Below are positions 27,179-61,319 of a stretch of DNA of 64,000 bases, in pieces. The notes under the pieces are model-generated. The model saw only the letters and a program-made list of their open reading frames with translations. It was not told the origin of the DNA and did no database searches. The stretch's first letter is position 1. Each line of letters opens with the position of its first letter. Position numbers and translations under genes: made by a program. The stretch comes from Octopus sinensis (taxonomy: Eukaryota): contig NC_043023.1 in the NCBI RefSeq assembly GCF_006345805.1, forward strand, positions 10,292,001 to 10,356,000. The letters run 5' to 3'.

Positions 27179-27821
27179 ACGTGGCGAATAAAGATTGTGT
27201 CACACAAATATATATATCCGGCATGAGTTGAGAAGGCACAGACGGTGTGAAAGTGCTCTTGTTGTCTAAAGCTGGAGTCAATGTCGTGGATAACAATATT
27301 TGTTTCTTTCTTTACTACCCACAAGAACTAAACACAGAGGGGACAAACAAGGACAGACAAACGGATTAAGTCGATTACATCGACCCCCAGTGCGTAACTG
27401 GTATGTAATTTATCGACCCCGAAAGGATGAAAGGCAAAGTCGACCTTGGCGGAATTTGAACTCAGAATGTAACGGCATACAAAATACCTATTTCTTTATT
27501 ACCCACAAGGGGCTAAATACAGAGGGGACAAACAAGGACAGACAAACGGATTAAGTCAATTACATCGACCTCAGTGCGTAACTGGTACTTAATTTATCGA
27601 CGCCGAAAGGATGAAAGGCAAAGTCGACCTCGGCGGAATTTGAACTCAGAACGTAACGGTAGACGAAATACGGCTACGCATTTCGCCCGTCGTGCCAACG
27701 ATTCTGCCAGCTCGCCGTGGATAACAATGTTACCACATCTCTGCATTTCCTATTCTACTGTAATTCAGCAATAATCTAAAATATCCAAATCATTTTCATT
27801 CATCTTTTCAATGGGGTTTTA

Positions 27822-31400: not shown

Positions 31401-33029
31401 AAGCACAAAAGGCAAAGTCGACCTCGCCGGAATTTGAACTCAGAACGTAGTGGCTGATGAAATACTGCTAAGCATTTCGCCAGGCGTGCTAACGTTTCTG
31501 CGAGTTCGCCGACTTAGGTGAAGATGACTTCAACAGAATTTGAACTCAGAAAATGAAGACAGACGAAAAGCCACGAAGCATTTAGTCCAACTTGCTAACG
31601 ATTCTGCCAGCTCACCCCAAGTTAATACCATAGATTCATCTCTGGTGTCCAAGTACCAGCAGCTCAAAGAACAACCACATACTCTCTCTTTTACTCTTTT
31701 ACTTGTTTCAGTCATTTGACTGCGGCCATGCTGGAGCACCGCCTTTAGTCGAGCGAATCGACCCCGGGACTTATTCTTTGTAAGCCCGGTACTTATTCTA
31801 TCGGTCTCTTTTGCCGAACCGCTAAGTGACGGGGACGTAAACACACCAGCATCGGTTGTCAAGCGATGTTGCGGGGACAAACACAGACACACATATATAT
31901 ATATATTTTATTTATTTTATAGAAGGAGCTTCTACAGGACTAGAACTGTTTCATTCAAAAGAAATCATCATATATATATACGACAGGCTTCTTTCAGTTT
32001 CTGTCTACCAAATCCACTCACAAGGCATTGGTCGGCCCGGGGCTATAGCAGAAGACACTTGCCCAAGATGCCACGCAGTGGGACTGAATTCGGAACAATG
32101 TGGTTGGTTAGCAAGCTCACACAGCCACATGGAATTACATTGAAACATCGTGCTTGAATGTAGCAATACCACTTGTAAAGAATGTGGAGAACAACTTCAG
32201 CAGTGATCAGCCATTAACTCCTATATTCTGACTTCGGAGTTAATGTCTTTCGGCTTTATCTCTCACGTTCAACCTGAGCACTACCCCTCTCTTTTCTCTT
32301 TCACTTGTTTCAGTCATTTGACTGCGGCCATGCTGGAGCACCGCCTTTAATCGAGCAACTCAACCCCGGGACTTATTCTTTGTAAGCCTAGTACTTATTC
32401 TATCGGTCTCTTTTGCCGAACCGCTAAGTGATGGCGACGTAAACACACCAGCATCAGTTGTCAAGCAATGCTAGGGGGACAAACACAGACACACAAACAC
32501 ACACACGCATATATACAAATATACGATGGGCTTCTTTCCGTTTCCATCTACCAAATCCACTCACAAGGCATTGGTCATCCTGGGGCTATAGTAGAAGACA
32601 CTTACCCAAGGTGCCACGCAGTGAGACTGAACCCAGAACCATGTGGTTGGTAAACAAGCTACTTACCACACAGCCACTCCTACACCTGATTTGATGACAT
32701 TCTTTCCACTTTTGTAGTTGCATTTACTTAAAATGTTATTTAAAACTGTTTTCAAAGTTATACAAAGCTCCTTACACGGAGCTTGATATAACTTGATATA
32801 GGTACCTGATTCCAGGTCCAGGGTCACAGCAAGGAAATCTACCATTTTCAGGCCTTCTCTTTCTTTAATCTTCCTACTTTCCCTCCTCGTTTATCTCCTT
32901 GTACCTTGTCTATGTTCTTTTGATTTCCTCTTTCTTCCCCTAATTCTTTTATCCCTCCGCCCCTTATCTCTCTCCTCTCCTTTCACATAACCAGTGTTTG
33001 TCCAAGCATGAACTTTCTTACATTTACTT

Positions 33030-33807: not shown

Positions 33808-35616
33808 TTATGGCTTCTCATTAATATGTGTAAGTTCATGAGTAATTAAATGACCTCTTCTTACAAAGGATTTATCACAAATATCACAATGATATGGTTT
33901 ATCTCCTGTATGAATGGATTTGTGTCTAGTAAGGTTAGATTTTTTAGAGAATGATTTACCACATATACCACACTGATATGGCCCCTCATTAGTATGGGTA
34001 ACTTCATGAGAAGTTAAATCACTTCTTCCTACAAAGGATTTATCACAAATATTGCAGTGATATGGTTTATCTCCTGTATGAATTGATTTGTGATAAGTAA
34101 GAATACTCTTACGAGAGAATGATTTACCACAAATATCACAATGATATGGTTTCTCTCCTGTATGAATGGATTTGTGTCTAGTAAGGTTAGATTTTTTAGA
34201 GAATGATTTACCACAAATATCACACTGATATGGCCTCTCATTAGTATGGGTAACTTCATGAGAAGTTAAGTCACTTCTTCCTACAAAGGATTTATCACAG
34301 ATATTACAGTGATATGGCTTATCTCCTGTATGAATTGATTTGTGATAAGTAAGAATACTCTTACGAGAGAATGATTTACCACAAATATCACAAGAATATG
34401 GTTTCTCTCCTGTATGAGTGTATTTGTGAGTGGTAAGGTTACCTTTTAGAGAGAATGATTTACCACATATATCGCACTGATATGGCCTCTTGTTAGTATG
34501 TGTAAGTTTATGAGCAGTTAAATTACTTCTTACTACGAAGGATTTATCACAGATATCACATTGATATGGTTTCTCTCCTGTATGAATGGATTTGTGTCTA
34601 GTAAGGTTAGATTTTTTAGAGAATGATTTACCACAAATATCACACTGATATGGCCTCTCATTAGTATGGGTAACTTCATGAGAAGTTAAGTCACTTCTTC
34701 CTACAAAGGATTTATCACAGATATTACAGTGATATGGTTTCTCTCCTGTATGAGTGTATTTATGGTCAGTAAGGCTACTCCTATGAGAGAATGATTTACC
34801 ACAAATATCACAAGAATATGGTTTCTCTCCTGTATGAGTGTATTTGTGAGTGGTAAGGTTACCTTTTAGAGAGAATGATTTACCACATATATCGCACTGA
34901 TATGGCCTCTCATTAGTATGTGTAAGTTTATGAGCAGTTAAATTACTTCTTACTGCGAAGGATTTATCACAGATATCACACTGATATGGTTTCTCTCCTG
35001 TATGAATGGATTTGTGATGAGTAAGGTGACTTTTTTGAGAGAATGATTTACCACAAATATCACAAGAATATGGTTTATCTCCTGTATGAATGGATTTGTG
35101 ATAAGTAAGGCCACGCCTCTGAGAGAATGTTTTACCACAAATATCACACTGATATGGCCTCTCATTAGTATGTGTAAGTTTATGAGAAGTTAAGTCACTT
35201 CTTCCTACAAAGGATTTATCACAGATATTACAGTGATATGGTTTATCTCCTGTATGAATTGATTTGTGATAAGTAAGGCTATTCTTATGAGAGAATGATT
35301 TACCACAAATATCACAAGAATATGGTTTCTCTCCAGTATGAATGTATTTGTGATAACTTAAGCCACTCCTATGAGAGAATGATTTACCACAGATATCACA
35401 ATGATATGGTTTCTCTCCTGTATGAGTGTATTTGTGAGAAGTAAGACTACTTTTCTGCATAAAAGACTTTCCACATATCTCACAGCGATATTTCTTTCCT
35501 CCTGCATGGATACGTTTGTGAGCAGCGAGATTTCCCTTACTAGATAAAGACTTTTTACAGATATCACATTGGTGTGATAATTTTTCTCTTTCTTTTGGCA
35601 TCTCTTCAGGATTCAT
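33808..35616 (-). CDS. C2H2 zinc-finger protein, 602 aa, 21 tandem fingers, no recognisable effector domain
   Basis: Uninterrupted ORF from ATG at 35616 ([20 protein letters not shown]...). 21 CxxC...HxxxH units with TGEKP-type linkers; acceptor tttcag| at 35997/35996. Confidence 0.95.
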
Positions 35617-37689
35617 TATTGTTCTCCAGTACACAAGCACAAAATGTATTTTTTTGTTTCTTCTTTATATATTTCTTGGTTGATTCAAAAAGTTCTACAG
35701 CTATAATTACAGCTGATCTGATCTTTGTGAATATCTGAAGCTAATACAAACACATTTGCAGATTTTTCCAAGTTCAAGCAGAAGGTCCGATACTTTTGTA
35801 AATATTCCTGGCAATGGAATAAAGCAAATGTTGCTATTAATTCAGAAGAAATATTTTCAGTTATTTACCAGAGATTTGTTATAGAAACAGGGTTATATAT
35901 ATTATTTATAATATCTTCCATTAGTCTTCAAGTGATGATCAATATTCATGATGGATCTGATGTAAAAACTCCTTTATACCACAAACATTTCATATTCTGA
36001 AATGACACAGAAACAGTAGAAGATATAGGAAAGACTTAAAAAGCAGAGATTCAACAATAGAAAATATAACTATATTTTCATAATCATAAACTGTGGATAT
36101 AAACTTTTACCCCAATAATTAGTCTTTAAAATTTATTTTGTTATTAAAATTATATGATACAACCTTGTGTAATGTCCACATATGCACAGCCTTCAGCTCG
36201 TCCACCTTCAAGTATTATGTAAAATGCTAAACTACAAAATACTGGCCAATAACATTCTACTGTCTTAGGAAACATAAGTCACTGTTGTTTAGCCCTAGGT
36301 CACACCCGACTGAGCAGATCTATTTAGGAAATTAGTGTTCATGAGTGTCATGACCTTTAGAACAGATCAAACATAAACATCACTATAATTTAGTCACTAA
36401 CTCACCACACACACACACATCTTATATACACACGCTGACATAGAACCAACATTGAACCATTTATTCGCAATATTACCGAATCTGGAACTTAACTATGGTC
36501 TGTCTATAGCACTTATTCAGCATTACCTGACACCTTTGGGTCTCAATAACACCATTATCTTTTATAACCTCAACTTCTCGCTATATATATATATATATAT
36601 ATATACTGGGCTGCCCCTGTGAGACCCTCTATGCTGTTCATCTTACAGCTGAATCAATACCAGCAAGAGAAAAGAAATTTCAGGTGTGTAAACAGGGTCT
36701 GCAATTAGTGGGCCTTAGAGTTAATTTAGCAGAGACCAAAGTCTTAATTAGTTAGTAAGCAGACAAATCCTACAGGGAAATGGCCCTGCTTGAAATATGG
36801 AAAAGGAATATGAAGAAACTCGATAAGGTGTATCCAGTGCAAGATATGGATACATAAGATATGCAGCAATATTAGAGGAACGTCAACACGAAAAATAGTA
36901 GATGTACATGTGCAATAAATACAAGAAAATAGATGCTGTCAAATGTGGAGTGGAGAGCGAGTGCTAACTTAGAAATAGTTGGTAGAATGTAACAAGTTAG
37001 GGAGCAAAAGACTTGCTTAAGTGGGGTTTTGTCTCTGAAGACCTTATTTTGAGAATTTCCTACCATTGTTATATTTTAACATTTTCTCAGTGACTAGGAA
37101 ATATATTTTCCACACATTCACTCTCACATGGTTACCATCTACTCAATGGCTCCATCGCATATTCACTAGATAACCACCATCATTAGCATTTAATGAACAA
37201 ACTTATCCCTTCGTTTATCTCTCATCACTGTATCTTAGCATCTAACACCAAGTATTTTCTATATTAAATAATATCAACAAATTATATAACTTCAAAACAA
37301 ACATTTATTGTAGATCAGTTTGGAGAAATGTGTAACTTTTATCATACATTGATCGAGTGTGAATTCTATGCTGTATCAGCAATTGTATAGGCTCATAAGG
37401 GACACGTTTGGATAGGGTTGCCAGATTAGAAAACCATATATACGGGACACTTTTAAAATATATATAAATATAAATTTATAAATGCCTACACACCCAATAT
37501 ATTATATAAAAGCAGAGAGATAAGTTAAAAACATAAAGCAAGTATTTTAATGGGTTCTGAGGTCAAAATTATTTAATACAAGCTAAAAAAAAATTGGTGC
37601 AGCATCATTCATTTTTCTCAAGCAGAGATAAATAAATACCTGGCCAGGTACAGGTGTAGATAGTCTGAACGAATACCCGGCTATTAAAA

Positions 37690-43050: not shown

Positions 43051-44856
43051 TCTCGTGGAAACTCGGGTTTCAAACAAACAGAAAATCTGTAAAACTTTCT
43101 ACCATTTGTAGAGTATAAGTGAATGGAAAATAGAATAAAACATTGCCTTGGAGAAGAGTTGAATACTGGACTGGAAGCATTCCGTCGGTTACGACGAGGG
43201 TTCCGGTTGATCCGAATCAACGGAACAGCCTGCTCGTGAAATTAACGTGCAAGTGGCTGAGCACTCCACAGACACGTGTACCCTTAACGTAGTTCTCAGG
43301 GATATTCAGCGTGACACAGAGAGTGACAAGGCCGGCCCCTTGAAATGGATGGAAGCACTCCATCGGTTACGACGACGAGGGTTCCGGTTGATCCGAATCA
43401 ACGGAACAGCCTGCTCGTGAAATTGACGTGCAAGTGGCTGAGCACTCCACAGACACGTGTACCCTTAACATAGTTCTCGGGGATATTCAGCGTGACACAG
43501 AGAGTGACAAGGCCAGCCCTTTGAAATACAGGTACAACAGAAACAGGAAATAAGAGTGAGAGAAAGTTGTGGTGAAAGAGTACAGCAGGGATCACCACCA
43601 TCCCCTGCCGGAGCCTCGGGTGGAAGCACTCAGTCGGTTACGACGATGAGGGTTCCGGTTGATCCGAATCAACGGAACAGCCTGCTCGTGAAATTAACGT
43701 GCAAGTGGCTGAGCACTCCACAGACACGTGTACCTTTAACATAGTTCTCGGGGATATTCAGCGTGACAAAGACAGTGACAAGGCCGGCCCTTTGAAATAC
43801 AGGTACAACAGAAACAGGAAGTAAGAGTGAGAGAAAATTGTGGTGAAAGAGTACAGCAGTGATCACCACCATCCCCTACCGGAGCCTCGTGGAGCTTTAG
43901 GTGTTTTTGCTCAATAAACACTCACTTACAATTATACTCATTTAGTATCATCAATATCATCAGTTGGCTTCCATGTTCCATGCTAGCATGGATTGGATAG
44001 TTTGACAGGATCCAATGGGCCCAAAGACTGCGTGTCACTCCAGGGTCTACTTTGCCTTTGTTTCTGTACATCGTTGCTCTCCCTAATGTTAACAACTCTA
44101 CACAGTGTGCAGTGGAGGCGCAATGGCCCAGTGGTTAGGGCAGCGGACTCGCGGTCATAGGATCGCGGTTTCGATACCATTTGTAGAGTATAAATGAATG
44201 AAAAATGGAATAAAACATTGCCTTGGAGAAGAGTTGAATACTATCAACATGCTAGGCCATCATAAGACTGGTTTTATCGAAAACGATAAACACATTGAGT
44301 GCAGTTTGTATGCTAACAAAGAAGATATGCTTATACAGATAGACAGATGAGGCTACACTTATTTATAGATGCTCACACACGTCTAATGATGCATATGCAT
44401 AGACACACAATCCTCAAACACTCACCTGATACATAAATGGATGGAAGCATTCCGTCGGTTCCGACGACGAGGGTTCCGGTTGATCCGAATCAACGGAACA
44501 GCCTGCTCATGAAATTAACGTGTAAGTGGCTGAGCACTCCACAGACACGTGTACCCTTAACGTAGTTCTCGGGGATATTCAGCGTGACACAGAGAGTGAC
44601 AAGGCCGGCCCCTTTGAAATACAGGTACAACAGAAACAGGAAGAAAGAGTGAGAGAAAGTTGTGGTGAAAGAGTACAGCAGGGATCACCACCATCCCCTG
44701 CCGGAGCCTCGTGGAGCCTTAGGTGTTTTCGCTCAATAAACACTCACAACGAAACCGCGAGTCTGCTGCCCTAACCACTGGGCCATTGCGCCTCCACTAT
44801 GCATGAATATACTCATACACACATACATACACATAGATATATAAACATACTTTTCA

Positions 44857-47800
44857 AGGCGGTGATCTGGCAGAAGCGTTAGCACGCCGGGCGAAATGCT
44901 CAGTGGTATTTCGTCTGCCTTTACGTTCGGAGTTCAAATTCCACCGAGGTCGACTTTGCCTTTCATCCTTTCGGGGTCGATTAAATAACCACTGGTTCGA
45001 TATAATCGACTTAATCCGTGTGTCTGTCCTTGTTTGTCCCCTCCGTATTTAGCCCCTTGTGGGTAGTAAAGAAATAGGTATTTCGTCTGCTGTTACGTTC
45101 TGAGTTCAAATTCCGCTCAGGTCGACTTTGCCTTTCATCCTTTCGGGGTCGATAAATTAAGTACCGGTTACGCACTGGGATCGATATAATCGACTTAATC
45201 CGTGTGTCTGTCCTTGTTTGTCCCCTCTATGTTTAGCCCCTTGTGGGTAGTAAAGAAATAGGTATTTCGTCTGCCTTTACGTTCGGAGTTCAAATTCCAC
45301 CGAGGTCGACTTTGCCTTTCATCCTTTCGGGGTCGATAAATTAAGTACCGGTTACGCACTGGGATCGATATAATCGACTTAATCCCTTTGTCTGTCCTTG
45401 TTTGTCCCCTCTGTGTTTAGCCCCTTGTGGGTAGTAAAGAAATAGGTATTTCGTCTGCCTTTACGTTCGGAGTTCAAATTCCACCGAGGTCGACTTTGCC
45501 TTTCATCCTTTCGGGGTCGATAAATTAAGTACCGGTTACGCACTGGGATCGATATAATCGACTTAATCCCTTTGTCTGTCCTTGTTTGTCCCCTCTGTGT
45601 TTAGCCCCTTGTGGGTAGTAAAGAAATAGGTATTTCGTCTGCCTTTAAGTTCGGAGTTCAAATTCCACCGAGGTCGACTTTGCCTTTCATCCTTTCGGGG
45701 TCGATAAATTAAGTACCGGTTACGCACTGGGATCGATATAATCGACTTAATCCCTTTGTCTGTCCTTGTTTGTCCCCTCTGTGTTTAGCCCCTTGTGGGT
45801 AGTAAAGAAATAGGTATTTCGTCTGCTGTTACGTTCTGAGTTCAAATTCCGCTGAGGTCGACTTTGCCTTTCATCCTTTCGGGGTCGATTAAATAACCAC
45901 TGGTTCGATATAATCGACTTAATCCGTGTGTCTGTCCTTGTTTGTCCCCTCTGTGTTTAGCCCCTTGTGGGTAGTAAAGAAATAGGTATTTCGTCTGCTG
46001 TTACGTTCGGAGTTTAAATTCCGCCGAGGTCAACTTTGCCTTTCATCCATTCAGGGTCGATAAATTAAGTACCGATTACGCACTGGAGTCGATGTAATCG
46101 ACTTAATCCGTTTGTCTATCCTTGTTTGTCCCCTCTATGTTTAGCCCCTTGTGGGTAGTAAAGAAATAGGTATTTCGTCTGTTGTTACGTTCTGAGTTCA
46201 AATTCCGCTGAGGTCGACTTTGCCTTTCATCCTTTCGGGGTCGATAAATTAAGTACCGGTTACGCACTGGGATCGATATAATCGACTTAATCCGTGTGTC
46301 TGTCCTTGTTTGTCCCCTCTATGTTTAGCCCCTTGTGGGTAGTAAAGAAATAGGTATTTCGTCTGCCTTTACGTTCGGAGTTCAAATTCCACCGAGGTCG
46401 ACTTTGCCTTTCATCCTTTCGGGGTCGATAAATTAAGTACCGGTTACGCACTGGGATCGATATAATCGACTTAATCCCTTTGTCTGTCCTTGTTTGTCCC
46501 CTCTGTGTTTAGCCCCTTGTGGGTAGTAAAGAAATAGGTATTTCGTCTGCCTTTACGTTCGGAGTTCAAATTCCACCGAGGTCGACTTTGCCTTTCATCC
46601 TTTCGGGGTCGATAAATTAAGTACCGGTTACGCACTGGGATCGATATAATCGACTTAATCCCTTTGTCTGTCCTTGTTTGTCCCCTCTGTGTTTAGCCCC
46701 TTGTGGGTAGTAAAGAAATAGGTATTTCGTCTGCCTTTACGTTCGGAGTTCAAATTCCACCGAGGTCGACTTTGCCTTTCATCCTTTCGGGGTCGATAAA
46801 TTAAGTACCGGTTACGCACTGGGATCGATATAATCGACTTAATCCGTGTGTCTGTCCTTGTTTGTCCCCTCTGTGTTTAGCACCTTGTGGGTAGTAAAGA
46901 AATAGGTATTTCGTCTGCTGTTACGTTCTGAGTTCAAATTCCGCTGAGGTCGACGTTGTCTTTCATCCTTTCGGGGTCGATTAAATAACCACTGGTTCGA
47001 TATAATCGACTTAATCCGTGTGTCTGTCCTTGTTTGTCCCCTCTGTGTTTAGCCCCTTGTGGGTAGTAAAGAAATAGGTATTTCGTCTGCTGTTACGTTC
47101 TGAGTTCAAATTCCACCGAGGTCGACTTTGCCTTTCATCCTTTCGGGGTCGATAAATAAAGTACCAGTTTCCCACTGGAGTCGATGTAATCGACTTAATT
47201 CCTTTGTCTGCCCTTGTTTGTCCCCTCTACGTTTAGCCCCTTGTGGGCAGTAAAGAAATAGGTATTTCGTCTGTCGTTACGTTCTGAGTTCAAATTCCGC
47301 TCAGGTCGACTTTGCCTTTCATCCTTTCGGGGTCGATTAAATAACCACTGGTTCGATATAATCGACTTAATCCGTGTGTCTGTCCTTGTTTGTCCCCTCT
47401 GTGTTTAGCCCCTTGTGGGTAGTAAAGAAATAGGTATTTCGTCTGCTGTTACGTTCTGAGTTCAAATTCCACCGAGGTCGACTTTGCCTTTCATCCTTTC
47501 GGGGTCGATAAATTAAGTACCGGTTACGCACTGGGATCGATATAATCGACTTAATCCGTGTGTCTGTCCTTGTTTGTCCCCTCTGTGTTTAGCCCCTTGT
47601 GGGTAGTAAAGAAATAGGTATTTCGTCTGCTGTTACGTTCTGAGTTCAAATTCCGCCGAGGTCGACTTTGCCTTTCATCCTTTCGGGGTCGATTAAATAA
47701 CCACTGGTTCGATATAATCGACTTAATCCGTGTGTCTGTCCTTGTTTGTCCCCTCCGTATTTAGCCCCTTGTGGGTAGTAAAGAAATAGGTATTTCGTCT

Positions 47801-50800
47801 GCTGTTACGTTCTGAGTTCAAATTCCGCCGAGGTCGACTTTGCCTTTCATCCTTTCGGGGTCGATAAATTAAGTACCGGTTACGCACTGGGATCGATATA
47901 ATCGACTTAATCCGTTTATCTGTCCTTGTTTGTCCCCTCTGTGTTTAGCACCTTGTGGGTAGTAAAGAAATAGGTATTTCGTCTGCTGTTACGTTCTGAG
48001 TTCAAATTCCGCTCAGGTCGACTTTGCCTTTCATCCTTTCGGGGTCGATTAAATAACCACTGGTTCGATATAATCGACTTAATCCGTGTGTCTGTCCTTG
48101 TTTGTCCCCTCTGTGTTTAGCCCCTTGTGGGTAGTAAAGAAATAGGTATTTCGTCTGCTGTTACGTTCTGAGTTCAAATTCCGCTGAGGTCGACTTTGCC
48201 TTTCATCCTTTCGGGGTCGATTAAATAACCACTGGTTCGATATAATCGACTTAATCCGTGTGTCTGTCCTTGTTTGTCCCCTCTGTGTTTAGCCCCTTGT
48301 GGGTAGTAAAGAAATAGGTATTTCGTCTGTTGTTACGTTCTGAGTTCAAATTCCGCCGAGGTCGACTTTGCCTTTCATCCTTTCGGGGTCGATAAATTAA
48401 GTACCGGTTACGCACTGCGATCGATATAATCGACTTAATCCGTTTATCTGTCCTTGTTTGTCCCCTCTGTGTTTAGCACCTTGTGGGTAGTAAAGAAATA
48501 GGTATTTCGTCTGCTGTTACGTTCTGAGTTCAAATTCCGCTGAGGTCGACTTTGCCTTTCATCCTTTCGGGGTCGATTAAATAACCACTGGTTCGATATA
48601 ATCGACTTAATCCGTGTGTCTGTCCTTGTTTGTCCCCTCTGTGTTTAGCCCCTTGTGGGTAGTAAAGAAATAGGTATTTCGTCTGTTGTTACGTTCTGAG
48701 TTCAAATTCCGCCGAGGTCGACTTTGCCTTTCATCCTTTCGGGGTCGATAAATTAAGTACCGGTTACGCACTGGGATCGATATAATCGACTTAATCCCTT
48801 TGTCTGTCCTTGTTTGTCCCCTCTGTGTTTAGCCCCTTGTGGGTAGTAAAGAAATAGGTATTTCGTCTGCTGTTACGTTCTGAGTTCAAATTCCGCTGAG
48901 GTCGACGTTGCCTTTCATCCTTTCGGGGTCGATTAAATAACCACTGGTTCGATATAATCGACTTAATCCGTGTGTCTGTCCTTGTTTGTCCCCTCTGTGT
49001 TTAGCCCCTTGTGGGTAGTAAAGAAATAGGTATTTCGTCTGCTGTTACGTTCTGAGTTCAAATTCCACCGAGGTCGACTTTGCCTTTCATCCTTTCGGGG
49101 TCGATAAATAAAGTACCAGTTTCCCACTGGAGTCGATGTAATCGACTTAATTCCTTTGTCTGCCCTTGTTTGTCCCCTCTACGTTTAGCCCCTTGTGGGC
49201 AGTAACGAAATAGGTATTTCGTCTGTCGTTACGTTCTGAGTTCAAATTCCGCTCAGGTCGACTTTGCCTTTCATCCTTTCGGGGTCGATTAAATAACCAC
49301 TGGTTCGATATAATCGACTTAATCCGTGTGTCTGTCCTTGTTTGTCCCCTCTGTGTTTAGCCCCTTGTGGGTAGTAAAGAAATAGGTATTTCGTCTGCTG
49401 TTACGTTCTGAGTTCAAATTCCACCGAGGTCGACTTTGCCTTTCATCCTTTCGGGGTCGATAAATTAAGTACCGGTTACGCACTGCGATCGATATAATCG
49501 ACTTAATCCGTGTGTCTGTCCTTGTTTGTCCCCTCTGTGTTTAGCCCCTTGTGGGTAGTAAAGAAATAGGTATTTCGTCTGCTGTTACGTTCTGAGTTCA
49601 AATTCCGCCGAGGTCGACTTTGCCTTTCATCCTTTCGGGGTCGATTAAATAACCACTGGTTCGATATAATCGACTTAATCCGTGTGTCTGTCCTTGTTTG
49701 TCCCCTCCGTATTTAGCCCCTTGTGGGTAGTAAAGAAATAGGTATTTCGTCTGCTGTTACGTTCTGAGTTCAAATTCCGCCGAGGTCGACTTTGCCTTTC
49801 ATCCTTTCGGGGTCGATAAATTAAGTACCGGTTACGCACTGGGATCGATATAATCGACTTAATCCGTTTATCTGTCCTTGTTTGTCCCCTCTGTGTTTAG
49901 CACCTTGTGGGTAGTAAAGAAATAGGTATTTCGTCTGCTGTTACGTTCTGAGTTCAAATTCCGCTGAGGTCGACTTTGCCTTTCATCCTTTCGGGGTCGA
50001 TTAAATAACCACTGGTTCGATATAATCGACTTAATCCGTGTGTCTGTCCTTGTTTGTCCCCTCTGTGTTTAGCCCCTTGTGGGTAGTAAAGAAATAGGTA
50101 TTTCGTCTGCTGTTACGTTCTGAGTTCAAATTCCGCTGAGGTCGACTTTGCCTTTCATCCTTTCGGGGTCGATTAAATAACCACTGGTTCGATATAATCG
50201 ACTTAATCCGTGTGTCTGTCCTTGTTTGTCCCCTCTGTGTTTAGCCCCTTGTGGGTAGTAAAGAAATAGGTATTTCGTCTGTCGTTACGTTCTGAGTTCA
50301 AATTCCGCTCAGGTCGACTTTGCCTTTCATCCTTTCGGGGTCGATTAAATAACCACTGGTTCGATATAATCGACTTAATCCGTGTGTCTGTCCTTGTTTG
50401 TCCCCTCTGTGTTTAGCCCCTTGTGGGTAGTAAAGAAATAGGTATTTCGTCTGCTGTTACGTTCTGAGTTCAAATTCCACCGAGGTCGACTTTGCCTTTC
50501 ATCCTTTCGGGGTCGATAAATTAAGTACCGGTTACGCACTGGGATCGATATAATCGACTTAATCCGTGTGTCTGTCCTTGTTTGTCCCCTCTGTGTTTAG
50601 CCCCTTGTGGGTAGTAAAGAAATAGGTATTTCGTCTGCTGTTACGTTCTGAGTTCAAATTCCGCCGAGGTCGACTTTGCCTTTCATCCTTTCGGGGTCGA
50701 TTAAATAACCACTGGTTCGATATAATCGACTTAATCCGTGTGTCTGTCCTTGTTTGTCCCCTCCGTATTTAGCCCCTTGTGGGTAGTAAAGAAATAGGTA

Positions 50801-53800
50801 TTTCGTCTGCTGTTACGTTCTGAGTTCAAATTCCGCCGAGGTCGACTTTGCCTTTCATCCTTTCGGGGTCGATAAATTAAGTACCGGTTACGCACTGGGA
50901 TCGATATAATCGACTTAATCCGTTTATCTGTCCTTGTTTGTCCCCTCTGTGTTTAGCACCTTGTGGGTAGTAAAGAAATAGGTATTTCGTCTGCTGTTAC
51001 GTTCTGAGTTCAAATTCCGCTGAGGTCGACTTTGCCTTTCATCCTTTCGGGGTCGATTAAATAACCACTGGTTCGATATAATCGACTTAATCCGTGTGTC
51101 TGTCCTTGTTTGTCCCCTCTGTGTTTAGCCCCTTGTGGGTAGTAAAGAAATAGGTATTTCGTCTGCTGTTACGTTCTGAGTTCAAATTCCGCTGAGGTCG
51201 ACTTTGCCTTTCATCCTTTCGGGGTCGATTAAATAACCACTGGTTCGATATAATCGACTTAATCCGTGTGTCTGTCCTTGTTTGTCCCCTCTGTGTTTAG
51301 CCCCTTGTGGGTAGTAAAGAAATAGGTATTTCGTCTGTTGTTACGTTCTGAGTTCAAATTCCGCCGAGGTCGACTTTGCCTTTCATCCTTTCGGGGTCGA
51401 TAAATTAAGTACCGGTTACGCACTGCGATCGATATAATCGACTTAATCCGTTTATCTGTCCTTGTTTGTCCCCTCTGTGTTTAGCACCTTGTGGGTAGTA
51501 AAGAAATAGGTATTTCGTCTGCTGTTACGTTCTGAGTTCAAATTCCGCTGAGGTCGACTTTGCCTTTCATCCTTTCGGGGTCGATTAAATAACCACTGGT
51601 TCGATATAATCGACTTAATCCGTGTGTCTGTCCTTGTTTGTCCCCTCTGTGTTTAGCCCCTTGTGGGTAGTAAAGAAATAGGTATTTCGTCTGTTGTTAC
51701 GTTCTGAGTTCAAATTCCGCCGAGGTCGACTTTGCCTTTCATCCTTTCGGGGTCGATAAATTAAGTACCGGTTACGCACTGGGATCGATATAATCGACTT
51801 AATCCCTTTGTCTGTCCTTGTTTGTCCCCTCTGTGTTTAGCCCCTTGTGGGTAGTAAAGAAATAGGTATTTCGTCTGCTGTTACGTTCTGAGTTCAAATT
51901 CCGCTGAGGTCGACGTTGCCTTTCATCCTTTCGGGGTCGATTAAATAACCACTGGTTCGATATAATCGACTTAATCCGTGTGTCTGTCCTTGTTTGTCCC
52001 CTCTGTGTTTAGCCCCTTGTGGGTAGTAAAGAAATAGGTATTTCGTCTGCTGTTACGTTCTGAGTTCAAATTCCACCGAGGTCGACTTTGCCTTTCATCC
52101 TTTCGGGGTCGATAAATAAAGTACCAGTTTCCCACTGGAGTCGATGTAATCGACTTAATTCCTTTGTCTGCCCTTGTTTGTCCCCTCTACGTTTAGCCCC
52201 TTGTGGGCAGTAACGAAATAGGTATTTCGTCTGTCGTTACGTTCTGAGTTCAAATTCCGCTCAGGTCGACTTTGCCTTTCATCCTTTCGGGGTCGATTAA
52301 ATAACCACTGGTTCGATATAATCGACTTAATCCGTGTGTCTGTCCTTGTTTGTCCCCTCTGTGTTTAGCCCCTTGTGGGTAGTAAAGAAATAGGTATTTC
52401 GTCTGCTGTTACGTTCTGAGTTCAAATTCCACCGAGGTCGACTTTGCCTTTCATCCTTTCGGGGTCGATAAATTAAGTACCGGTTACGCACTGCGATCGA
52501 TATAATCGACTTAATCCGTGTGTCTGTCCTTGTTTGTCCCCTCTGTGTTTAGCCCCTTGTGGGTAGTAAAGAAATAGGTATTTCGTCTGCTGTTACGTTC
52601 TGAGTTCAAATTCCGCCGAGGTCGACTTTGCCTTTCATCCTTTCGGGGTCGATTAAATAACCACTGGTTCGATATAATCGACTTAATCCGTGTGTCTGTC
52701 CTTGTTTGTCCCCTCCGTATTTAGCCCCTTGTGGGTAGTAAAGAAATAGGTATTTCGTCTGCTGTTACGTTCTGAGTTCAAATTCCGCCGAGGTCGACTT
52801 TGCCTTTCATCCTTTCGGGGTCGATAAATTAAGTACCGGTTACGCACTGGGATCGATATAATCGACTTAATCCGTTTATCTGTCCTTGTTTGTCCCCTCT
52901 GTGTTTAGCACCTTGTGGGTAGTAAAGAAATAGGTATTTCGTCTGCTGTTACGTTCTGAGTTCAAATTCCGCTGAGGTCGACTTTGCCTTTCATCCTTTC
53001 GGGGTCGATTAAATAACCACTGGTTCGATATAATCGACTTAATCCGTGTGTCTGTCCTTGTTTGTCCCCTCTGTGTTTAGCCCCTTGTGGGTAGTAAAGA
53101 AATAGGTATTTCGTCTGCTGTTACGTTCTGAGTTCAAATTCCGCTGAGGTCGACTTTGCCTTTCATCCTTTCGGGGTCGATTAATAACCACTGGTTCGAT
53201 ATAATCGACTTAATCCGTGTGTCTGTCCTTGTTTGTCCCCTCTGTGTTTAGCCCCTTGTGGGTAGTAAAGAAATAGGTATTTCGTCTGTTGTTACGTTCT
53301 GAGTTCAAATTCCGCCGAGGTCGACTTTGCCTTTCATCCTTTCGGGGTCGATAAATTAAGTACCGGTTACGCACTGGGATCGATATAATCGACTTAATCC
53401 GTTTATCTGTCCTTGTTTGTCCCCTCTGTGTTTAGCACCTTGTGGGTAGTAAAGAAATAGGTATTTCGTCTGCTGTTACGTTCTGAGTTCAAATTCCGCT
53501 GAGGTCGACTTTGCCTTTCATCCTTTCGGGGTCGATTAAATAACCACTGGTTCGATATAATCGACTTAATCCGTGTGTCTGTCCTTGTTTGTCCCCTCTG
53601 TGTTTAGCCCCTTGTGGGTAGTAAAGAAATAGGTATTTCGTCTGCTGTTACGTTCTGAGTTCAAATTCCGCCGAGGTCAACTTTGCCTTTCATCCATTCA
53701 GGGTCGATAAATTAAGTACCGATTACGCACTGGAGTCGATGTAATCGACTTAATCCGTTTGTCTATCCTTGTTTGTCCCCTCTATGTTTAGCCCCTTGTG

Positions 53801-54718
53801 GGTAGTAAAGAAATAGGTATTTCGTCTGTTGTTACGTTCTGAGTTCAAATTCCGCCGAGGTCGACTTTGCCTTTCATCCTTTCGGGGTCGATAAATTAAG
53901 TACCGGTTACGCACTGGGATCGATATAATCGACTTAATCCGTGTGTCTGTCCTTGTTTGTCCCCTCTGTGTTTAGCACCTTGTGGGTAGTAAAGAAATAG
54001 GTATTTCGTCTGCTGTTACGTTCTGAGTTCAAATTCCACCAAGGTCGACTTTGCCTTTCATCCTTTCGGGGTCGATTAAATAACCACTGGTTCGATATAA
54101 TCGACTTAATCCGTGTGTCTGTCCTTGTTTGTCCCCTCTGTGTTTAGCCCCTTGTGGGTAGTAAAGAAATAGGTATTTCGTCTGCTGTTACGTTCTGAGT
54201 TCAAATTCCACCGAGGTCGACTTTGCCTTTCATCCTTTCGGGGTCGATAAATTAAGTACCGGTTATGCACTGGAGTCGATGTAATCGACTTAATCCGTTT
54301 GTCTATCCTTGTTTGTCCCCTCTATGTTTAGCCCCTTGTGGGTAGTAAAGAAAGAGGTATTTCGTCTGCTGTTACGTTCTGAGTTCAAATTCCACCGAGG
54401 TCGACTTTGCCTTTCATCCTTTCGGGGTCGATAAATTAAGTACTGGTTACGCACTGGAGTCGATGTAATTGACTTAATCCGTTTGTCTATCCTTGTTTGT
54501 CCCCTCTATGTTTAGCCCCTTGTGGGTAGTAAAGAAATAGGTATTTCGTCTGCTGTTACGTTCTGAGTTCAAATTCTGCCGAGGTCGACTTTGCCCTTCA
54601 TCCTTTCGGGGTCGATAAATTAAGTACCGGTTATGCACTGGGATCGATAAAATCAACTTAATCCGTTTGTCTGTCCTTGTTTGTCCCCTCTGTGTTTAGC
54701 CCCTTGTGGGTAGTAGAG
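44857..54718 (+). repeat. SINE-B-derived satellite: 1 head + 55 headless bodies (172-bp and 184-bp types) with higher-order structure
   Basis: ggtatttcg unit starts counted at 44905, 45077, 45261 ... 54540. The tRNA-like head appears only at 44857-44904. Confidence 0.97.
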
Positions 54719-54920
54719 AAATATATACTTTTCAGTTAAATAAATATATATACATATATAGGTGTGTGTGTGTAGTATAAGATATGGGATTATCACATAA
54801 ATCTCCTTTAACAGATCTCACAGTAATCCAAAACGAAGAAGTGTAATGCAGAGTGTCTATGCATAAGATATCCAGAGGATCTATTTGATGAAATTATTTC
54901 ATGAGGTGTATAAAAACCAT

Positions 54921-56608: not shown

Positions 56609-57799
56609 TTGGGTTGGCAACTAAATTCCCACCATTTTTTTAAATTTTGGAATTTATTGTTTTTAAATTCTGGAATCTATTTTTTGCAAGAATTCTATTT
56701 TTGAATCATTTTGGAATCTATTTTGCTTTCTTTCCCAGATTAATCTTAGTTAATTTTAGTTAATTTCAGATCATTAAAATGGAAAGTCAAGTTAAGAAAA
56801 ACAAGCATTTTCGACACCTCCTTGTTTTTGCTTTTAATCAAGGTTCTAAGGCCACGAAAGCTGCTCACGACATTTTTGCTGTGTATGGAGAGGGTGCCAT
56901 GGCTGAAAGAACCGCTCGTGATTGGTATGCCAAGTTCAAAAATGGAAATTTTGACCTCAAAGATGCACCTCGTTCTGGCCGTCCAGTTGGGTTCAACGAA
57001 GAGCAATTAAACCAACTTTTACATGAAAATTCTCATCAAATGACAAGGGAATTGGCAGAGAAAATGGAATGCTCCCATACTGCTATAGAGAAGCATCTTC
57101 ACTCGATGGGAAAGGTTCAGAAGTATGGAGCATGGTTTCTGCATGCTTTAAGTGACAACAACAAAAATCAACAAACCACAATCTTCGCTTGTTTGCTTAC
57201 TCGTCACCACTCAACTCATGGACACAAGCAATGATTTCTTTACCGAATATAGTTACTAGCGACAAAAAATGGTACCTGTACATCAATATGAAGCAGCGTA
57301 AGGAATGGCTTAGCCCCGGTAAACAGGCGACACTGCTCGTAAAACAAGATCTTCATCCGCATGAAACGATGTTGTGCATATGGCGGGACTAGGAAGGGAT
57401 TATCCATTACAAATTGCTTGAACGGAACCAAACGGTTAACACGGAACTCTATGTTCAACAGATGAAACGACCAAGGAAGCCATTCAAACACATGGTTGGA
57501 AAGTGCTGCCACACCCAACGTTCTCCTGATTTGGCACCAACGAATTTCCACCTCTTTCAAATGCTATGCACAGAGTTTCATTCAATTCTGATGCAGAATT
57601 GAGAGCTTGGTTGGATCAATTTTTCGAGTCGAAATCAGGTGATTTCTACCAACGAGGTATTGAAAATTTTGTTGAACGTTGGGAAGAAGTTGTAAATAAC
57701 AAGGGTGTATACATTATTGATTAATTAGTTGTTATTTTTTATTAAACTTTTAAAAAAATTAAATTTAAAAACACTGTGGGAACTTAGTTGCCAACCCAA
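56609..57799 (+). mobile_element. Mariner element with both TIRs and TA TSD; transposase pseudogene
   Basis: TA|ttgggttggcaactaa ... ttagttgccaacccaa|TA. MESQVKKNKHFRHLL...RSGRP..., then IVTSDKKW, MLCIW and SPDLAPTNFHLF motifs. Stop at 57232-57234, further stops, and loss of the HDNA segment. Confidence 0.93.
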
Positions 57800-58697: not shown

Positions 58698-59950
58698 AAG
58701 ACATTTCTTTCAAAAAATTACTTTCAATATTGATACAATCAATCATCATCATTTAACATCCGCCTCCATTGCTGGCATGGGTTGGACAGTTTGACAGGAG
58801 CTGGCCAGGAGGAAGACTGCACCTGACTACTGTGTCTGTTTTGGCATGGTTTTTACACCTGGATGCCCTTCTGTAAAAACCATGCCTAAACTGACCTCAC
58901 CTGTGCCGGTACTACATAAAAAAACACTCAGGGTGGGCTTAGGAAGGGCATCCAACTATAAAAACCATGGCAAAACAAACACACAGGTGTGGTACAGTCT
59001 TCTGCCTGGTTTCATCACAATGATATGGTTTCTCACCTGTATGAATATTTACATGTCACTCTTCTGTATAATTATGTATGTGGATATATCTCTTTACTGC
59101 CCACAAGGGGCTAAACATAGAGGGGACAAACAAAGACAGACAAAGGGATTAAGTCGATTACATCGATCCCAGTAAGAAACTGGTACTTTATTTATCGACC
59201 CTGAAAGGATGAAAGACAAAGTCGACCTCGGCGGAATTTGAACTCAGAACGTAGCGACAGGCGAAATACCACTGAGCATCTCGCCCGGTGCGCTAATGTT
59301 TCTGCCAACTCACTGCCCTGCTTATTCTTTATTCTACAATATTCAATGCATGCATCAGTCTAGCGAGCTTGCAGAAACCGTTAGTACGCTGGTTCAAGTG
59401 CTTAGTGGATTTTGTCTGTCTTCACGTTCTAATTCCGCGGAGGTCGACTTTGCCTTATATAATTATGCATGTGGATTATATCTCTTTACTGCCCACAAGG
59501 GGCTAAACATAGAGGGGACAAACAAGGACAGACAAACGGATTAAGTCGATTACATCGACCCCAGTGCGTAACTGGTACTTGATTTATCGACCCCGAAAGG
59601 ATGAAAGGCAAAGTCGACCTCGGCGGAATTTGAACTCAAAACATAAAGGTAGACGAAATACCTATCTCTTTACTGCCCACAAGGGGCTAAACATAGAGGG
59701 GACAAACAAGGACAGACAAAGGGATTAAGTCGATTACATCGACCCCAGAGCGTAACTGGTACTTGATTTATCGACCCCGAAAGGATGAAAGGCAAAGTCG
59801 ACCTCGGCGAAATTTGAACTCAGAACGTAGCGACAGGCGAAATACCGCTGAGCATTACGCCCGGTGTGCTAACGTTTCTGCCAGCTCGCCGCCAATTATG
59901 TATTGTGGATAGTAGGTTGTTGCTTTTGAGAGGATAATATACCACAGTTA

Positions 59951-61319
59951 TCAGTCACAAGGTTTATCCTCTGTATGAATGAGTCTGTGTTTCGTTAAGA
60001 GACCTATTTGAGGGAATGACTCACCACAGGTACCACAGTGATGTGGTTTCTCTCCTGTATGAATGAGTTTGTGAGTAGCTAGGTGATCGACTTGGGAGAA
60101 TGACTTATCACAGATATCACAGTGATGTGGTCTCTCTTCTGTATGAATGCGTTTGTGTCTAGTCAGCCCACTGCTTCCAGAGAAAGATTTACCACAGATA
60201 TCACAGTGATATGGTTTATCTCCTGTATAAAGACGTTTATGCATAGTTAAGTTGTCCGTACGAGAGAAGGATTTATCATTCACATCACAGTGATATGGTT
60301 TCTCTTCTGTATGAATATAAACATGTATAGTCAGATTATCATTCTCAGGGAATGGTTGCTCAGAGGTATCACACTGATGTGGTTTCTCTCCCGAATGAAT
60401 ACGTTTATGCGTAGTTAAGTTACCCTTATGAGAGAAATATTTACCACAGATCTCACAACGATAAGGTTTTTCTCCTGTATGAATGCGTTTGTGTGTAGTT
60501 AAGATACCATTCTGAGAAAATGATTTCCCACAGACATCACAATGAAATGGTTTCTCCCCTGTATGAATGGATTTGTGTCTAATTAAGTGGCTTCCGACAG
60601 AGAATGATTTCCCACAGATATTGCAATCATATGGTTTTTCCCCTGTATGAATGTGTTTGTGTTCAGTCAGGCTGTTCCTTTGAGAGAATGATTTACCACA
60701 GATATCACAGAGAAACGGCTTCTCTCCAGTATGAATATGCTTGTGAATTATTAAGCTTTCTTTCTGGGAGAAAGACTTACCACAGATATCACAAGGGTAC
60801 GGTCTCTCTCCTGTATGAATACGTTTGTGTATAGCTAAGTTGCCGTGGCCTGAAAACGATTTATCACAGATGTCACAGTGATACGGTTTGTCTCCTGTAT
60901 GAATTCGTTTATGTATTGTTAAGCCACCTGTCTCTGAGAATGATTTATCACAGATATCACAGCGATATGGTTTCTCTCCTGTATGAATGCGTTTGTGTAT
61001 AGTCAAGCTGCCTTTCTGAGAAAACGATTTACCACAGACATCACAGTGATATGGTTTCTCTCCTGTATGAATATATTTGTGAATATTGAAGTTACCCTTT
61101 TGAGAAAACGATTTTCCACAGATATCACAGTGATATGGCTTCTGTCCTGTATGAATGTATTTGTGTGTATTCAGGTTACCTTTTTGAGAAAATGACTTTC
61201 CACAGATATCACAAACAGTACAGCGGTTTTCCTATATCTTTTGGTATTTCATCAAGAGACTCATTGCCGTCAAACTGTGATTCACACTTAATATTGTCAA
61301 CACACAATTTGTTTTCCAT
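59951..61319 (-). CDS. C2H2 zinc-finger gene, 15 fingers (2 degenerate), with one +1 frameshift before finger 1
   Basis: ATG at 61319 gives [35 protein letters not shown], then an extra base in the run at 61213-61215. The finger frame is open to 59951; acceptor tttcag| at 61634/61633. Confidence 0.75.

Follow-up and report, generated by a model that had tools for sequence, protein, structure and literature searches.

The Octopus sinensis DNA analysed here, a stretch of 64,000 nucleotides referred to below as the window, raises the question of how a short retroposon came to carry a satellite-like array of 55 tandem bodies. The limits of the element responsible were indicated by its target-site duplication (TSD). 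The 10-bp sequence ATACTTTTCA was present at two sites only in the 64-kb window, 44847–44856 and 54725–54734 on the plus strand, which exactly flanked and abutted the element, the 3′ one containing a T4 run at 54729. The region in between (44857–54724) was a single element that began with a head of 48 bp, which carried a Pol III A box, and continued with 55 head-less units. An earlier reading made from the sequence only had given the same start but an end at 54718, short of the limit found here; a complete SINE tail closes the array at 54723, and head and array are enclosed by one TSD. The sole head of the element (44857–44904, plus strand) included the A-box-like sequence TGGCAGAAGCG at 44868–44878 and contributed the 5′ arm to a conserved hairpin. 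In agreement with the claim of a single head before the array, the A-box pattern TRGYNNANNNG matched the element once, at 44868. Identity between this head and the heads of seven dispersed copies of the same SINE was 81–93%, and its divergence from the family consensus was 12%, as for other old copies. As judged from the single head, the 55 head-less bodies and a flanking TSD unique in the window, the array derives from a single SINE insertion.

Division of the array (44905–54723, plus strand) at the anchor GGTATTTCGTCTG gave 55 units with starts that ranged from 44905 to 54540. These units, in the order SLLLLSLLLLLSLSLSLSSLSLSLSLSLSSSLSLSSLSLSLSLSLSSLSLLSLLL, comprised 25 of S type (172 bp, with one of 171 bp) and 30 of L type (184 bp); a total of 55 and the two lengths had been claimed, apart from the single 171-bp unit. 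TRF reported one array at 44990–54723, with a score of 15548 and 54.5 copies at period 184, and with 356 as a second period. Each unit was made up of a 119-bp core, the site of the B-box-like GTTCAAATTCC, and a 65-bp tail, and 28 distinct unit sequences were noted. The possibility that the S and L forms and the rare variants were purely in-array mutations was rejected, as S and L states also occurred in dispersed bodies at other loci and represent family-level body subtypes.

Both rare variants described in the sequence-only reading were located where it had placed them. The variant aaataaagtaccagtttccc was confined to units with starts at 47077, 49029 and 52037 (47077–47260, 49029–49212 and 52037–52220, plus strand), designated H type, while the strings gtcaactttg and ccattcaggg were confined to those with starts at 45985 and 53632, near the two ends of the array. 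The latter pair, unit 7 (45985–46168, plus strand) and its twin, unit 50 (53632–53815), were 98.9% identical to each other and further from the family consensus than central units. Distances from this consensus were 9–14 substitutions for edge and H-type units as opposed to 5–7 for central L units. A derived CCAG>CCGG change was present in all L units of the array except those of H type and absent from every dispersed copy, which argues for descent in situ from one L founder. H-type units, in addition to lacking this change, had approximately eight states in common with dispersed copies G and F (see below). Since they were closer to other dispersed copies than to their neighbours, their presence would require a founder with several, heterogeneous bodies or else ectopic gene conversion. 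Unit variants in general were enriched at CpG positions, in keeping with ordinary decay.

Dispersed copies of the same SINE

The family consensus (233 bp) comprised a head of 49 bp, in which a Pol III-type A box is located, and a 184-bp body (119-bp core and 65-bp tail), and bodies of dispersed copies were 88–93% identical to the array units. Seven dispersed copies were found in 54 kb of the window and seven in 36 kb of O. sinensis DNA. Those in the window carried their own TSDs of at least 12 bp, and the same SINE was present at loci of O. sinensis and O. bimaculoides with TSDs of 15–20 bp (e.g., TTATTTGCACACACAT in O. sinensis). As expected of a SINE, the element was short (less than 500 bp), dispersed and multi-copy, with TSDs of variable sequence. 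A sister SINE, type 1, shared the initial 119 bp, B-box-like motif included, had a different tail, and was the commoner form in O. bimaculoides; type-1 and type-2 tails had in common the terminal ...CTTGTG..TAG.GTA.AAA.GAA.TA. No match was returned by a literature search with strings of the SINE sequence, and a 23-mer of the core, scanned through metagenome and viral collections, identified one unrelated contig (L001) that had only a 33-bp motif in common.

Copies with several bodies in register are normal for this family: among 15 elements, eight had two or more, with one body in seven elements, two in six, three in one and 55 in one. Approximately 102 kb of sampled Octopus DNA held copies with one to three bodies only. 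Within the window, copy A (10554–10944, plus strand) began with a head and an S-type body, to which a further core bearing the other, type-1 tail was joined, an architecture that was also noted at a second O. sinensis locus (L003, 29494–29882). Copy B (23801–24143, plus strand) had a head and 1.6 bodies, interrupted by a (TA)n microsatellite. The copies on the minus strand were C (27307–27717; head and two bodies, TSD ATTGTTATCCAC), D (30915–31515; head and three bodies of alternating subtype), F (59479–59893; head and two bodies) and G (59087–59320; head and one body). In all multi-body elements the body junction was identical, with AAAGAAATA followed directly by GGTATTTCG, its position coinciding with the loop of the conserved 13-bp hairpin. 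The end of some dispersed copies, ...AAATAGGTAT, showed overlap with GGTATTTCG, the start of a unit. Immediately upstream of the array, a second SINE family was represented by three tandem 5′-truncated copies, all of which reached the same 3′ end.

Descent in the reverse direction, in which a SINE acquired its body from a 172/184-bp satellite that already existed and the locus is an array of this satellite abutting a head, would have a precedent in the capture and spread of tandem repeats by transposable elements (PMC11121367) and would fit with the repetition of the body at most loci. It is nevertheless extremely improbable, given that the TSD encloses head and array as one unit, that the first 119 bp are common to the type-1 sister SINE with its different tail, that elements with one body and TSDs form the most frequent class, and that the derived substitution of the array L units is absent from all dispersed copies.

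An alternative source of tandem bodies is retroposition itself, if reverse transcriptase, on reaching the start of a body in one SINE RNA, switched to the 3′ end of another, by GGTAT microhomology or at the hairpin loop; in an extreme version, all 55 bodies arrived at the locus in this way. The identical junction in independent copies of two or three bodies, each with its own TSD, is consistent with such jumping, as is its position at the conserved hairpin loop. The overlap between copies ending in ...AAATAGGTAT and GGTATTTCG, the occurrence, at two loci unrelated to each other (10554–10944 in the window and 29494–29882 in L003), of a type-2 body joined to type-1 core and tail and the tandem copies of the neighbouring upstream family point in the same direction. 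Multi-body master genes that retrotransposed as such would, however, explain the dispersed dimers equally well, and further evidence against this alternative came from the internal structure of the array.

Block duplications within the array

When unit types were clustered at no more than one difference, the array read ABCCCDEFCCG [DHIJKLDDLDM][DHIJKLDD][IJKLDDLDM][DHIJKLDDLD] NOPQRS. Units 12–22 (46905–48856, plus strand) formed an 11-unit block of 1,952 bp with the claimed pattern S-L-S-L-S-L-S-S-L-S-L, and the claimed recurrence of this block at units 23–30, 31–39 and 40–49 was reproduced exactly by unit typing. The 11-unit pattern of the proposed higher-order repeat (HOR) is real, but its four copies are better read as nested duplications. 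The oldest recognisable block duplication (45077–47076, plus strand; six units, period 1,092 bp) was located at the left edge of the array, where units 2–6 and 8–12 were 99.12% identical (8 differences in 908 bp), with an uninterrupted match of 529 bp at offset 1092. Units 12–19 and 23–30 differed at 4 positions in 1,412 bp (99.72% identity). The youngest event was a 17-unit tandem duplication (47261–53275, plus strand), the copies of which, units 14–30 (47261–50268) and 31–47 (50269–53275), were 99.93% identical, with 2 differences in 3,008 bp, one of them a substitution, and an uninterrupted match of 2,162 bp at offset 3008. The array has undergone three nested block duplications, of 6, then 11, then 17 units, each younger than the one before. 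The 11-unit pattern is most simply explained by two 11-unit copies and the later 17-unit duplication, with the older 6-unit duplication at the left edge.

The four-gamete test failed for 55 of 190 pairs of site patterns, indicating that units are mosaic, which points to unequal exchange and gene conversion. Growth by out-of-register exchange, as proposed in the sequence-only reading, was supported by the nested duplications, the mosaic units and the greater divergence of edge units. Since the head had diverged by 12% while the blocks were nearly identical, amplification appears to be much younger than insertion. The description of the locus as a young satellite that arose from a retroposon was supported with respect to retroposon origin (from the head, TSD and dispersed copies).

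Jumping of reverse transcriptase cannot yield recurring multi-unit blocks of 1–3 kb with identities graded from 99.1 to 99.93%, and a Pol III/SINE cDNA of 9.9 kb is implausible. As an account of the multi-body structure it is possible but doubtful; in light of the block hierarchy and cDNA size, it is credible for the first two or three bodies of the founder alone, where it is compatible with in-place expansion. The near identity of units 14–30 and 31–47, with differences at two positions only and the 2,162-bp exact run, might also suggest an assembly artefact, in which the copy number of a real SINE with few tandem bodies was inflated or its units mis-ordered, and assemblers tend to fail on arrays of this kind. 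Such an artefact is unlikely, as the 28 distinct unit sequences can be ordered into a coherent hierarchy of duplications graded by identity, the TSD and the unique sequence on either side are preserved, and a substitution separates the young 17-unit copies, as real paralogous copies would show.

The preferred explanation, to which we assign a probability of about 0.8, is that a single octopus SINE insertion expanded in place by successive block duplications into a neutral proto-satellite. One SINE copy would have retroposed into the site ATACTTTTCA. Since extra bodies are often joined in register at the junction of AAAGAAATA and GGTATTTCG, this founder probably already had at least two bodies, one of S type and one of L type. 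Misalignment of the direct repeats in recombination or replication, presumably with unequal exchange between sister chromatids or homologues and gene conversion, would have led to block duplications of 6, then 11, then 17 units and so to the 55-unit array, with edges that kept their greater divergence. Crossing-over, whether meiotic or mitotic, and replication template switching look alike in array sequence of this kind. Beyond its established SINE origin, nested duplications and mosaicism, the array can most probably be regarded as an unstable, neutral proto-satellite and not as a functional device, neutrality being assumed, and its copy number is probably polymorphic.

Pol III motifs and CpG content

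The head had been described as tRNA-like, a description that found no support. Thus, ARAGORN identified no tRNA in the head at default or 90% thresholds and made inconsistent calls at thresholds of 70–80%, while searches of Rfam gave no tRNA match at E≤10 for the head region or at E≤1 for the window. No relevant family was found in the window at Rfam gathering and E-value thresholds, and sub-threshold matches to miRNA families were dismissed as artefacts of AT microsatellites or hairpins. The space between the A box and the B-box-like motif, which were 64 bp apart from start to start, was filled by the 13-bp hairpin. Of the approximately 55 B boxes claimed, GTTCAAATTCC was present exactly in 53 of the 55 units; the B-box-like GAGTTCAAATTCC had one base more than GGTTCGANNCC and did not conform to GWTCRANNC. 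Local alignment of the SINE with an approximate mammalian MIR/CORE consensus gave a score of 20, compared with a mean of 21 for shuffled sequence, and matched at the B box alone, so that affiliation with CORE-SINEs was provisionally set aside. The octopus SINE OR2 has been listed as a CORE-SINE (PMC4758252).

No run of four or more T was present on the plus strand within the array (9.87 kb), the first such run being at 54729, 6 bp beyond it. The ratio of observed to expected CpG was 1.18 for the array, 0.68 for the rest of the window and 1.22 for dispersed copies of the same SINE. The dense CpG claimed for the array was evident from the first two values, but the third identifies it as a trait of the family. 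High CpG and absence of T4 runs, considered as special features of the array, were both rejected as such, since every family copy has them.

These motifs bear on a functional alternative, in which the B-box-like sites would recruit TFIIIC as a putative chromatin boundary or the array would be transcribed into putative small RNAs. The 53 exact copies of GTTCAAATTCC and one A box, the lack of a T4 run for 9.87 kb, the CpG ratio of 1.18 and the C2H2 zinc-finger ORFs at 33808–35640 and 59951–61006 are consistent with such a role. This alternative was considered highly unlikely because of the extra base in the B-box-like motif, which fails the generic B-box pattern, the presence of high CpG without T4 runs in every family copy, which points away from selection in the array, the ordinary decay of units with variants enriched at CpG positions, and the very recent block duplications and truncations, which fit drift and not constraint. 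A more far-reaching proposal, also improbable, is that the in-register addition of bodies is built into the SINE family, through jumping of reverse transcriptase at the hairpin loop or GGTAT. The family would then act as a genome-wide generator of proto-satellites, and the array, free of terminators and with B-box-like sites at intervals of ~178 bp, would be a putative TFIIIC or chromatin boundary or a long Pol III unit in a zinc-finger cluster.

Related arrays and genomic setting

The array illustrates known mechanisms and reveals no new one; it is a clean example and not an unprecedented one. Its units were homologous to part of a dispersed SINE and its terminal unit reached the SINE terminus within one TSD, as is characteristic of SINE-derived arrays. 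In the SINE-derived satellites of squamates (sSats), the terminal unit likewise continues as far as the end of the SINE (Vassetzky, Kosushkin & Ryskov 2023, PMC10702118). Tandem repetition of part of a SINE described as tRNA-related and a longer terminal unit (in the octopus, the one with the 5′ head) are common to both, as are units of 150–180 bp, alternating di- or trimeric patterns and coexisting short and long loci. The octopus array differs in that its host is a cephalopod, its SINE family is unrelated, one long locus was seen, and the unit is the whole SINE minus the 48-bp head, with the TSD still visible. In another mollusc, the blood clam Scapharca broughtonii, arrays of the form TSD1-(SINE)n-TSD1 contain 4–15 units from SINEs of the V, Meta and Core superfamilies (PMC11481361); these also place tandem SINE sequence inside one TSD pair, in contrast with the 55 units and three tiers of multi-unit block duplication of the octopus array. 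PcH-sat of the limpet Patella caerulea, also a mollusc, is derived from a Nin-SINE and is a true satellite, pericentromeric and amounting to approximately 10% of the genome (PMC11121367). Although similar in its monomer, which is of roughly 179 bp and clearly homologous to a section of a SINE, PcH-sat is without A and B boxes, head and TSD, whereas the octopus array retains its head and a B-box-like motif in each unit and is a single, euchromatic-looking locus near genes. The octopus SINEs OK, OR1 and OR2 (Ohshima & Okada 1994), compared by description only, are from the same host genus and are tRNA-type Pol III retroposons.

Comparison with HORs of the alpha-satellite type revealed similarities in the nucleosome-sized monomers, the multi-monomer blocks of more than 99% identity and the divergent edge monomers. 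In the octopus array, however, the blocks are present in only 2–4 partly truncated copies, for which three discrete duplications suffice, and there is neither a homogenised HOR array nor a centromeric context, the length being 9.9 kb and not megabases. A classical HOR satellite has long homogenised arrays in heterochromatin with many HOR copies. The array at this locus departs from this in its length and in the number of its blocks, and it lies ~5–9 kb from ORFs.

Cephalopod genomes are SINE-rich. A literature search, with most subscription journals outside its coverage, gave no report of cephalopod satellites or SINE-derived arrays, and the present findings extend the SINE-derived satellites of squamates, the blood clam and limpets to cephalopods. 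The locus provides an unusually legible snapshot of a retroposon turning satellite-like, in which the founder head and TSD were kept, the last three steps of amplification can be read as graded blocks, and the seeding structure, in the form of in-register multi-body copies, is visible at other loci. If common or polymorphic in octopus, such arrays would be useful markers and also a source of structural instability near expanded clusters of zinc-finger genes.

Protein searches with a zinc-finger ORF and an ankyrin ORF of the window gave generic matches from animals of all kinds, repetitive proteins making poor queries, and look-ups of the exact products of window ORFs gave no match. An octopus source was supported decisively by the occurrence of the same SINE at loci of O. 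sinensis and O. bimaculoides. Mariners spread horizontally, so that a mariner fragment in the window was no more than supportive in this respect; it was 89% identical to sequence from O. vulgaris, 84% to that from O. bimaculoides and 80% to that from O. sinensis.

Anatomy of the array and its known counterparts

Tandem Repeats Finder reported 44990-54723 as a single tandem array (period 184, 54.5 copies, 91% matches, score 15548), with a period of 356 also reported for the same region. Cutting at the anchor GGTATTTCGTCTG, by which unit boundaries were set, gave 55 units, the first starting at 44905 and the last at 54540, each 172 or 184 bp in length except for a single unit of 171 bp. These comprised 25 short (S) and 30 long (L) units and included 28 distinct sequences. 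A head of 48 bp (44857-44904) lay 5' of the first unit and occurred only once in the element, as did a match to the A-box pattern TRGYNNANNNG, at 44868. Thus, the description of one head followed by 55 bodies of two lengths, made in a sequence-only reading of this DNA, was borne out. The S/L difference was likewise exactly as claimed, as were the two variants: a rare one in three units of L length, starting at 47077, 49029 and 52037 (H-type units), and one near the array edges, in the units that start at 45985 and 53632. The tandem array is confirmed as an observation and is far beyond chance.

The array was flanked by ATACTTTTCA at 44847-44856 and 54725-54734, a 10-mer absent elsewhere in the 64 kb. 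Enclosure of the head and all 55 bodies within one target-site duplication (TSD) indicates that the element retroposed once and was then amplified where it stood. Comparable TSD1-(SINE)n-TSD1 arrays of the blood clam S. broughtonii contain 4-15 units, of which the first copy has the full head, the following repeats are head-truncated and the last copy has the full tail (PMC11481361); the octopus array is the same kind of thing, although larger and with a multi-unit block structure. SINE-derived satellites of squamates have 150-180-bp units, di- or trimeric alternation and a terminal unit that reaches the SINE end (PMC10702118), and the limpet satellite PcH-sat is a Nin-SINE derivative (PMC11121367). 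Literature searches, largely outside subscription journals, found nothing published on satellites or SINE-derived arrays of cephalopods. The array represents a genuine and well-preserved case, in an octopus, of a SINE turning into a tandem array, and is of an already known kind.

Dispersed copies and the source of the unit subtypes

Seven further copies of the same SINE were found in the window by BLAST of both strands with head and unit: copy A at 10554-10944 (+), with the order head-S-L'; copy B at 23801-24143; copy C at 27307-27717; copy D at 30915-31515 (-), in which three bodies of two subtypes alternate; copy E at 30427-30597 (-); copy F at 59479-59893 (-); and copy G at 59087-59320 (-). 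Several had clear TSDs of their own, for example ATTGTTATCCAC at copy C. The consensus of the dispersed copies was 233 bp, made up of a 49-bp head and a 184-bp body, the latter comprising a 119-bp core with GAGTTCAAATTCC and a 65-bp tail. The same SINE was present in Octopus genomic loci reached through mariner protein matches. Elements carrying this 65-bp tail (type 2) numbered seven at an O. sinensis locus (L003), at 82-93% identity and with TSDs of 15-20 bp, whereas O. bimaculoides loci held mostly type 1, in which head and core are the same and the tail is different. Together with the mariner matches, this makes an octopus in or close to the vulgaris/sinensis group the very probable source of the window. 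The type-2 tail was present in 7 copies in 54 kb of the window and 7 in 36 kb of L003 as opposed to a single occurrence over 66 kb from O. bimaculoides (L002, L004 and L005), where the type-1 tail was dominant, a contrast that suggests a lineage-specific burst. An unrelated metagenome contig, Ga0209339_1041834 (L001 1791-1830), has the SINE-core motif GACTTTGCCTTTCATCCTTTCGGGGT..ATAAAT.AGTA, which may point to a central SINE domain conserved in other animals. Local alignment to an approximate MIR consensus, as a test for a CORE domain, gave no similarity beyond the B box.

Multi-body copies are normal for this SINE family. Among type-2-tail elements of the window and L003, seven had one body, six had two, one had three and one had 55, and the junction, AAAGAAATA followed directly by GGTATTTCG, was identical in all multi-body elements. 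In one O. sinensis dimer (L003 30532-30948), a perfect 16-bp TSD, TTATTTGCACACACAT, surrounded the head and two bodies. The states GATTAAATAA and GATATAATCG were common to S units and dispersed bodies B1, D1, D3, E1 and A1 (copy letter and body number), the 12-bp deletion of S was also present in A1, and GATAAATTAAG was common to L units and bodies C1, C2, D2 and A2. An origin of S and L as types within the array was ruled out by the presence of these states in dispersed bodies. The order of bodies in copy A resembled that of array units 1 and 2.

The H-type unit had approximately eight states in common with copies G and F and did not carry the CCAG>CCGG change found in every other L unit of the array. 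Either the founder, then, was probably a multi-body element of mixed subtypes from the start, or ectopic conversions reached the array later; the remaining L units descend from one founder body.

Between the A box and a B-box-like motif, a hairpin of 12-13 bp, CGGGCGAAATGC-NNNN-GCGGTATTTCGTCTG, was predicted in 13 of 14 copies (at 44888-44919 in the array and at the equivalent site elsewhere), one pair being kept by a compensatory double change in copy C and the L003 copy at 8961. The tandem-unit boundary coincided with the 3' side of the hairpin loop, internal array junctions retained a small palindrome, GAAATAGGTATTTC, and some copies terminated in AAATAGGTAT, which overlaps the unit start. 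Composite elements at two unrelated loci, window 10554-10944 (+) and L003 29494-29882 (+), consisted of a head, a type-2 body and, after the standard junction, a second core with a type-1 tail. Just upstream of the array, a second, unrelated SINE (43167-43925, -) was present as three tandem 5'-truncated copies covering consensus positions 54-362, 90-366 and 181-363, all reaching the same 3' end, a hallmark of template jumping or of repeated insertion. The boundary at the loop of a conserved hairpin, the overlapping copy ends, the composites and this adjacent SINE are all as expected if the first extra bodies were produced by reverse-transcriptase template jumping; dimeric master genes would explain dimers equally well, and template jumping, plausible for the seed only, is considered doubtful. 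The second-SINE complex, of approximately 1 kb, lay between 26-bp direct repeats, CATTCAYTTATACTCTACAAATGGTA, at 43100-43126 and 44175-44200.

Growth of the array

With unit types assigned by clustering at no more than 1 difference, the array read ABCCCDEFCCG [DHIJKLDDLDM][DHIJKLDD][IJKLDDLDM][DHIJKLDDLD] NOPQRS. The 11-unit block of units 12-22 (46905-48856, 1,952 bp) recurred, in truncated form, at units 23-30, 31-39 and 40-49, as the sequence-only reading had proposed. Base-level comparison of unit blocks refined the accompanying description of an 11-unit higher-order repeat (HOR). Units 2-6 and 8-12 (period 1,092 bp, 6 units) had 8 differences in 908 bp (99.12% identity), units 12-19 and 23-30 (period 1,952 bp, 11 units) had 4 in 1,412 bp (99.72%), and units 14-30 (47261-50268) and 31-47 (50269-53275; period 3,008 bp, 17 units) had 2 in 3,008 bp (99.93%), this youngest pair including an exact run of 2,162 bp. 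Removal of one 17-unit copy left two adjacent 11-unit copies, so that the four HOR copies are most simply explained by a duplication of 11 units and a later, out-of-register duplication of 17 units. Derived variants common to HOR copies 2 and 4, and likewise to 1 and 3, fit this history.

Four gametes were present in 55 of 190 site-pattern pairs, which indicates that units are mosaics resulting from exchange or conversion. Edge units (7, 50 and 53-55) and the H-type were 9-14 substitutions from the family consensus compared with 5-7 for central L units, and units 7-8 and 50-51 were 98.6% identical across 43 units. In agreement with the earlier suggestion, this is the pattern expected of unequal exchange, in which a homogenised centre is flanked by older variants. 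The head was 12% diverged from consensus, as in other old copies, which indicates that amplification is much younger than insertion. We place the probability of this model of array origin and growth at roughly 0.8; that the copy number is an artefact seems unlikely.

Functional hints and neighbouring features

The tRNA-like nature proposed for the head was not confirmed, as ARAGORN predicted no tRNA at default or 90% thresholds, with inconsistent calls at 70-80%, and an Rfam tRNA match was absent even at E<=10. The claim of about 55 Pol III B-boxes stood in so far as GTTCAAATTCC was present in 53 units, but this motif is one base longer than GGTTCGANNCC and the generic B-box pattern was not matched. 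The dense CpG noted earlier was evident from observed/expected ratios of 1.18 for the array and 0.68 for the remaining window but is a family trait, the ratio for dispersed copies being 1.22. CpG sites made up 13% of positions but held 15 of 50 variant states, a 2.3-fold excess that amounts to ordinary decay. Runs of four or more T were absent from the + strand over 9.87 kb, the first appearing at 54729 in the 3' TSD; the consensus unit is without T4, so that this absence has an effective sample of a single unit. The sequence offers no argument that the array is under selection, and functional readings of it are speculation.

Copies F and G (59087-59893, -) had subfamily variants in common and similar 3' flanks (ATCCACATGCATAATT and ATCCACATACATAATT), enclose an inverted SINE fragment (59426-59456) and look like a local duplication directly adjoining one end of a zinc-finger ORF (59951-61006). 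An older copy at 30427-31640 (-), comprising a head (31577-31616) and body E (30427-30597) with a possible TSD, TAACTTGGGG, appears to have been interrupted, through nested insertions, by copy D with its three bodies and approximately 320 bp of other sequence. Copies B and C lay on either side of an uninterrupted 743-aa ankyrin-repeat ORF of about 20 repeats (24947-27178, +), for which a protein search found no close homologue, the best identity being approximately 30-40%; a protein search with a zinc-finger ORF was likewise uninformative. A long near-perfect hairpin at 9057-9305, with arms of about 100 bp, scored 100 bits against the plant MIR841 model, under the gathering score, and is most likely a MITE-like inverted repeat rather than a miRNA. 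An N-terminal fragment of a Mos1/mariner transposase (HTH_48) at 56779-57234 (+) had its best matches in proteins of Octopus vulgaris (89%), O. bimaculoides (84%) and O. sinensis (80%) but also matched a mite and a bee (79-85% identity), as is typical of mariners, which spread horizontally.
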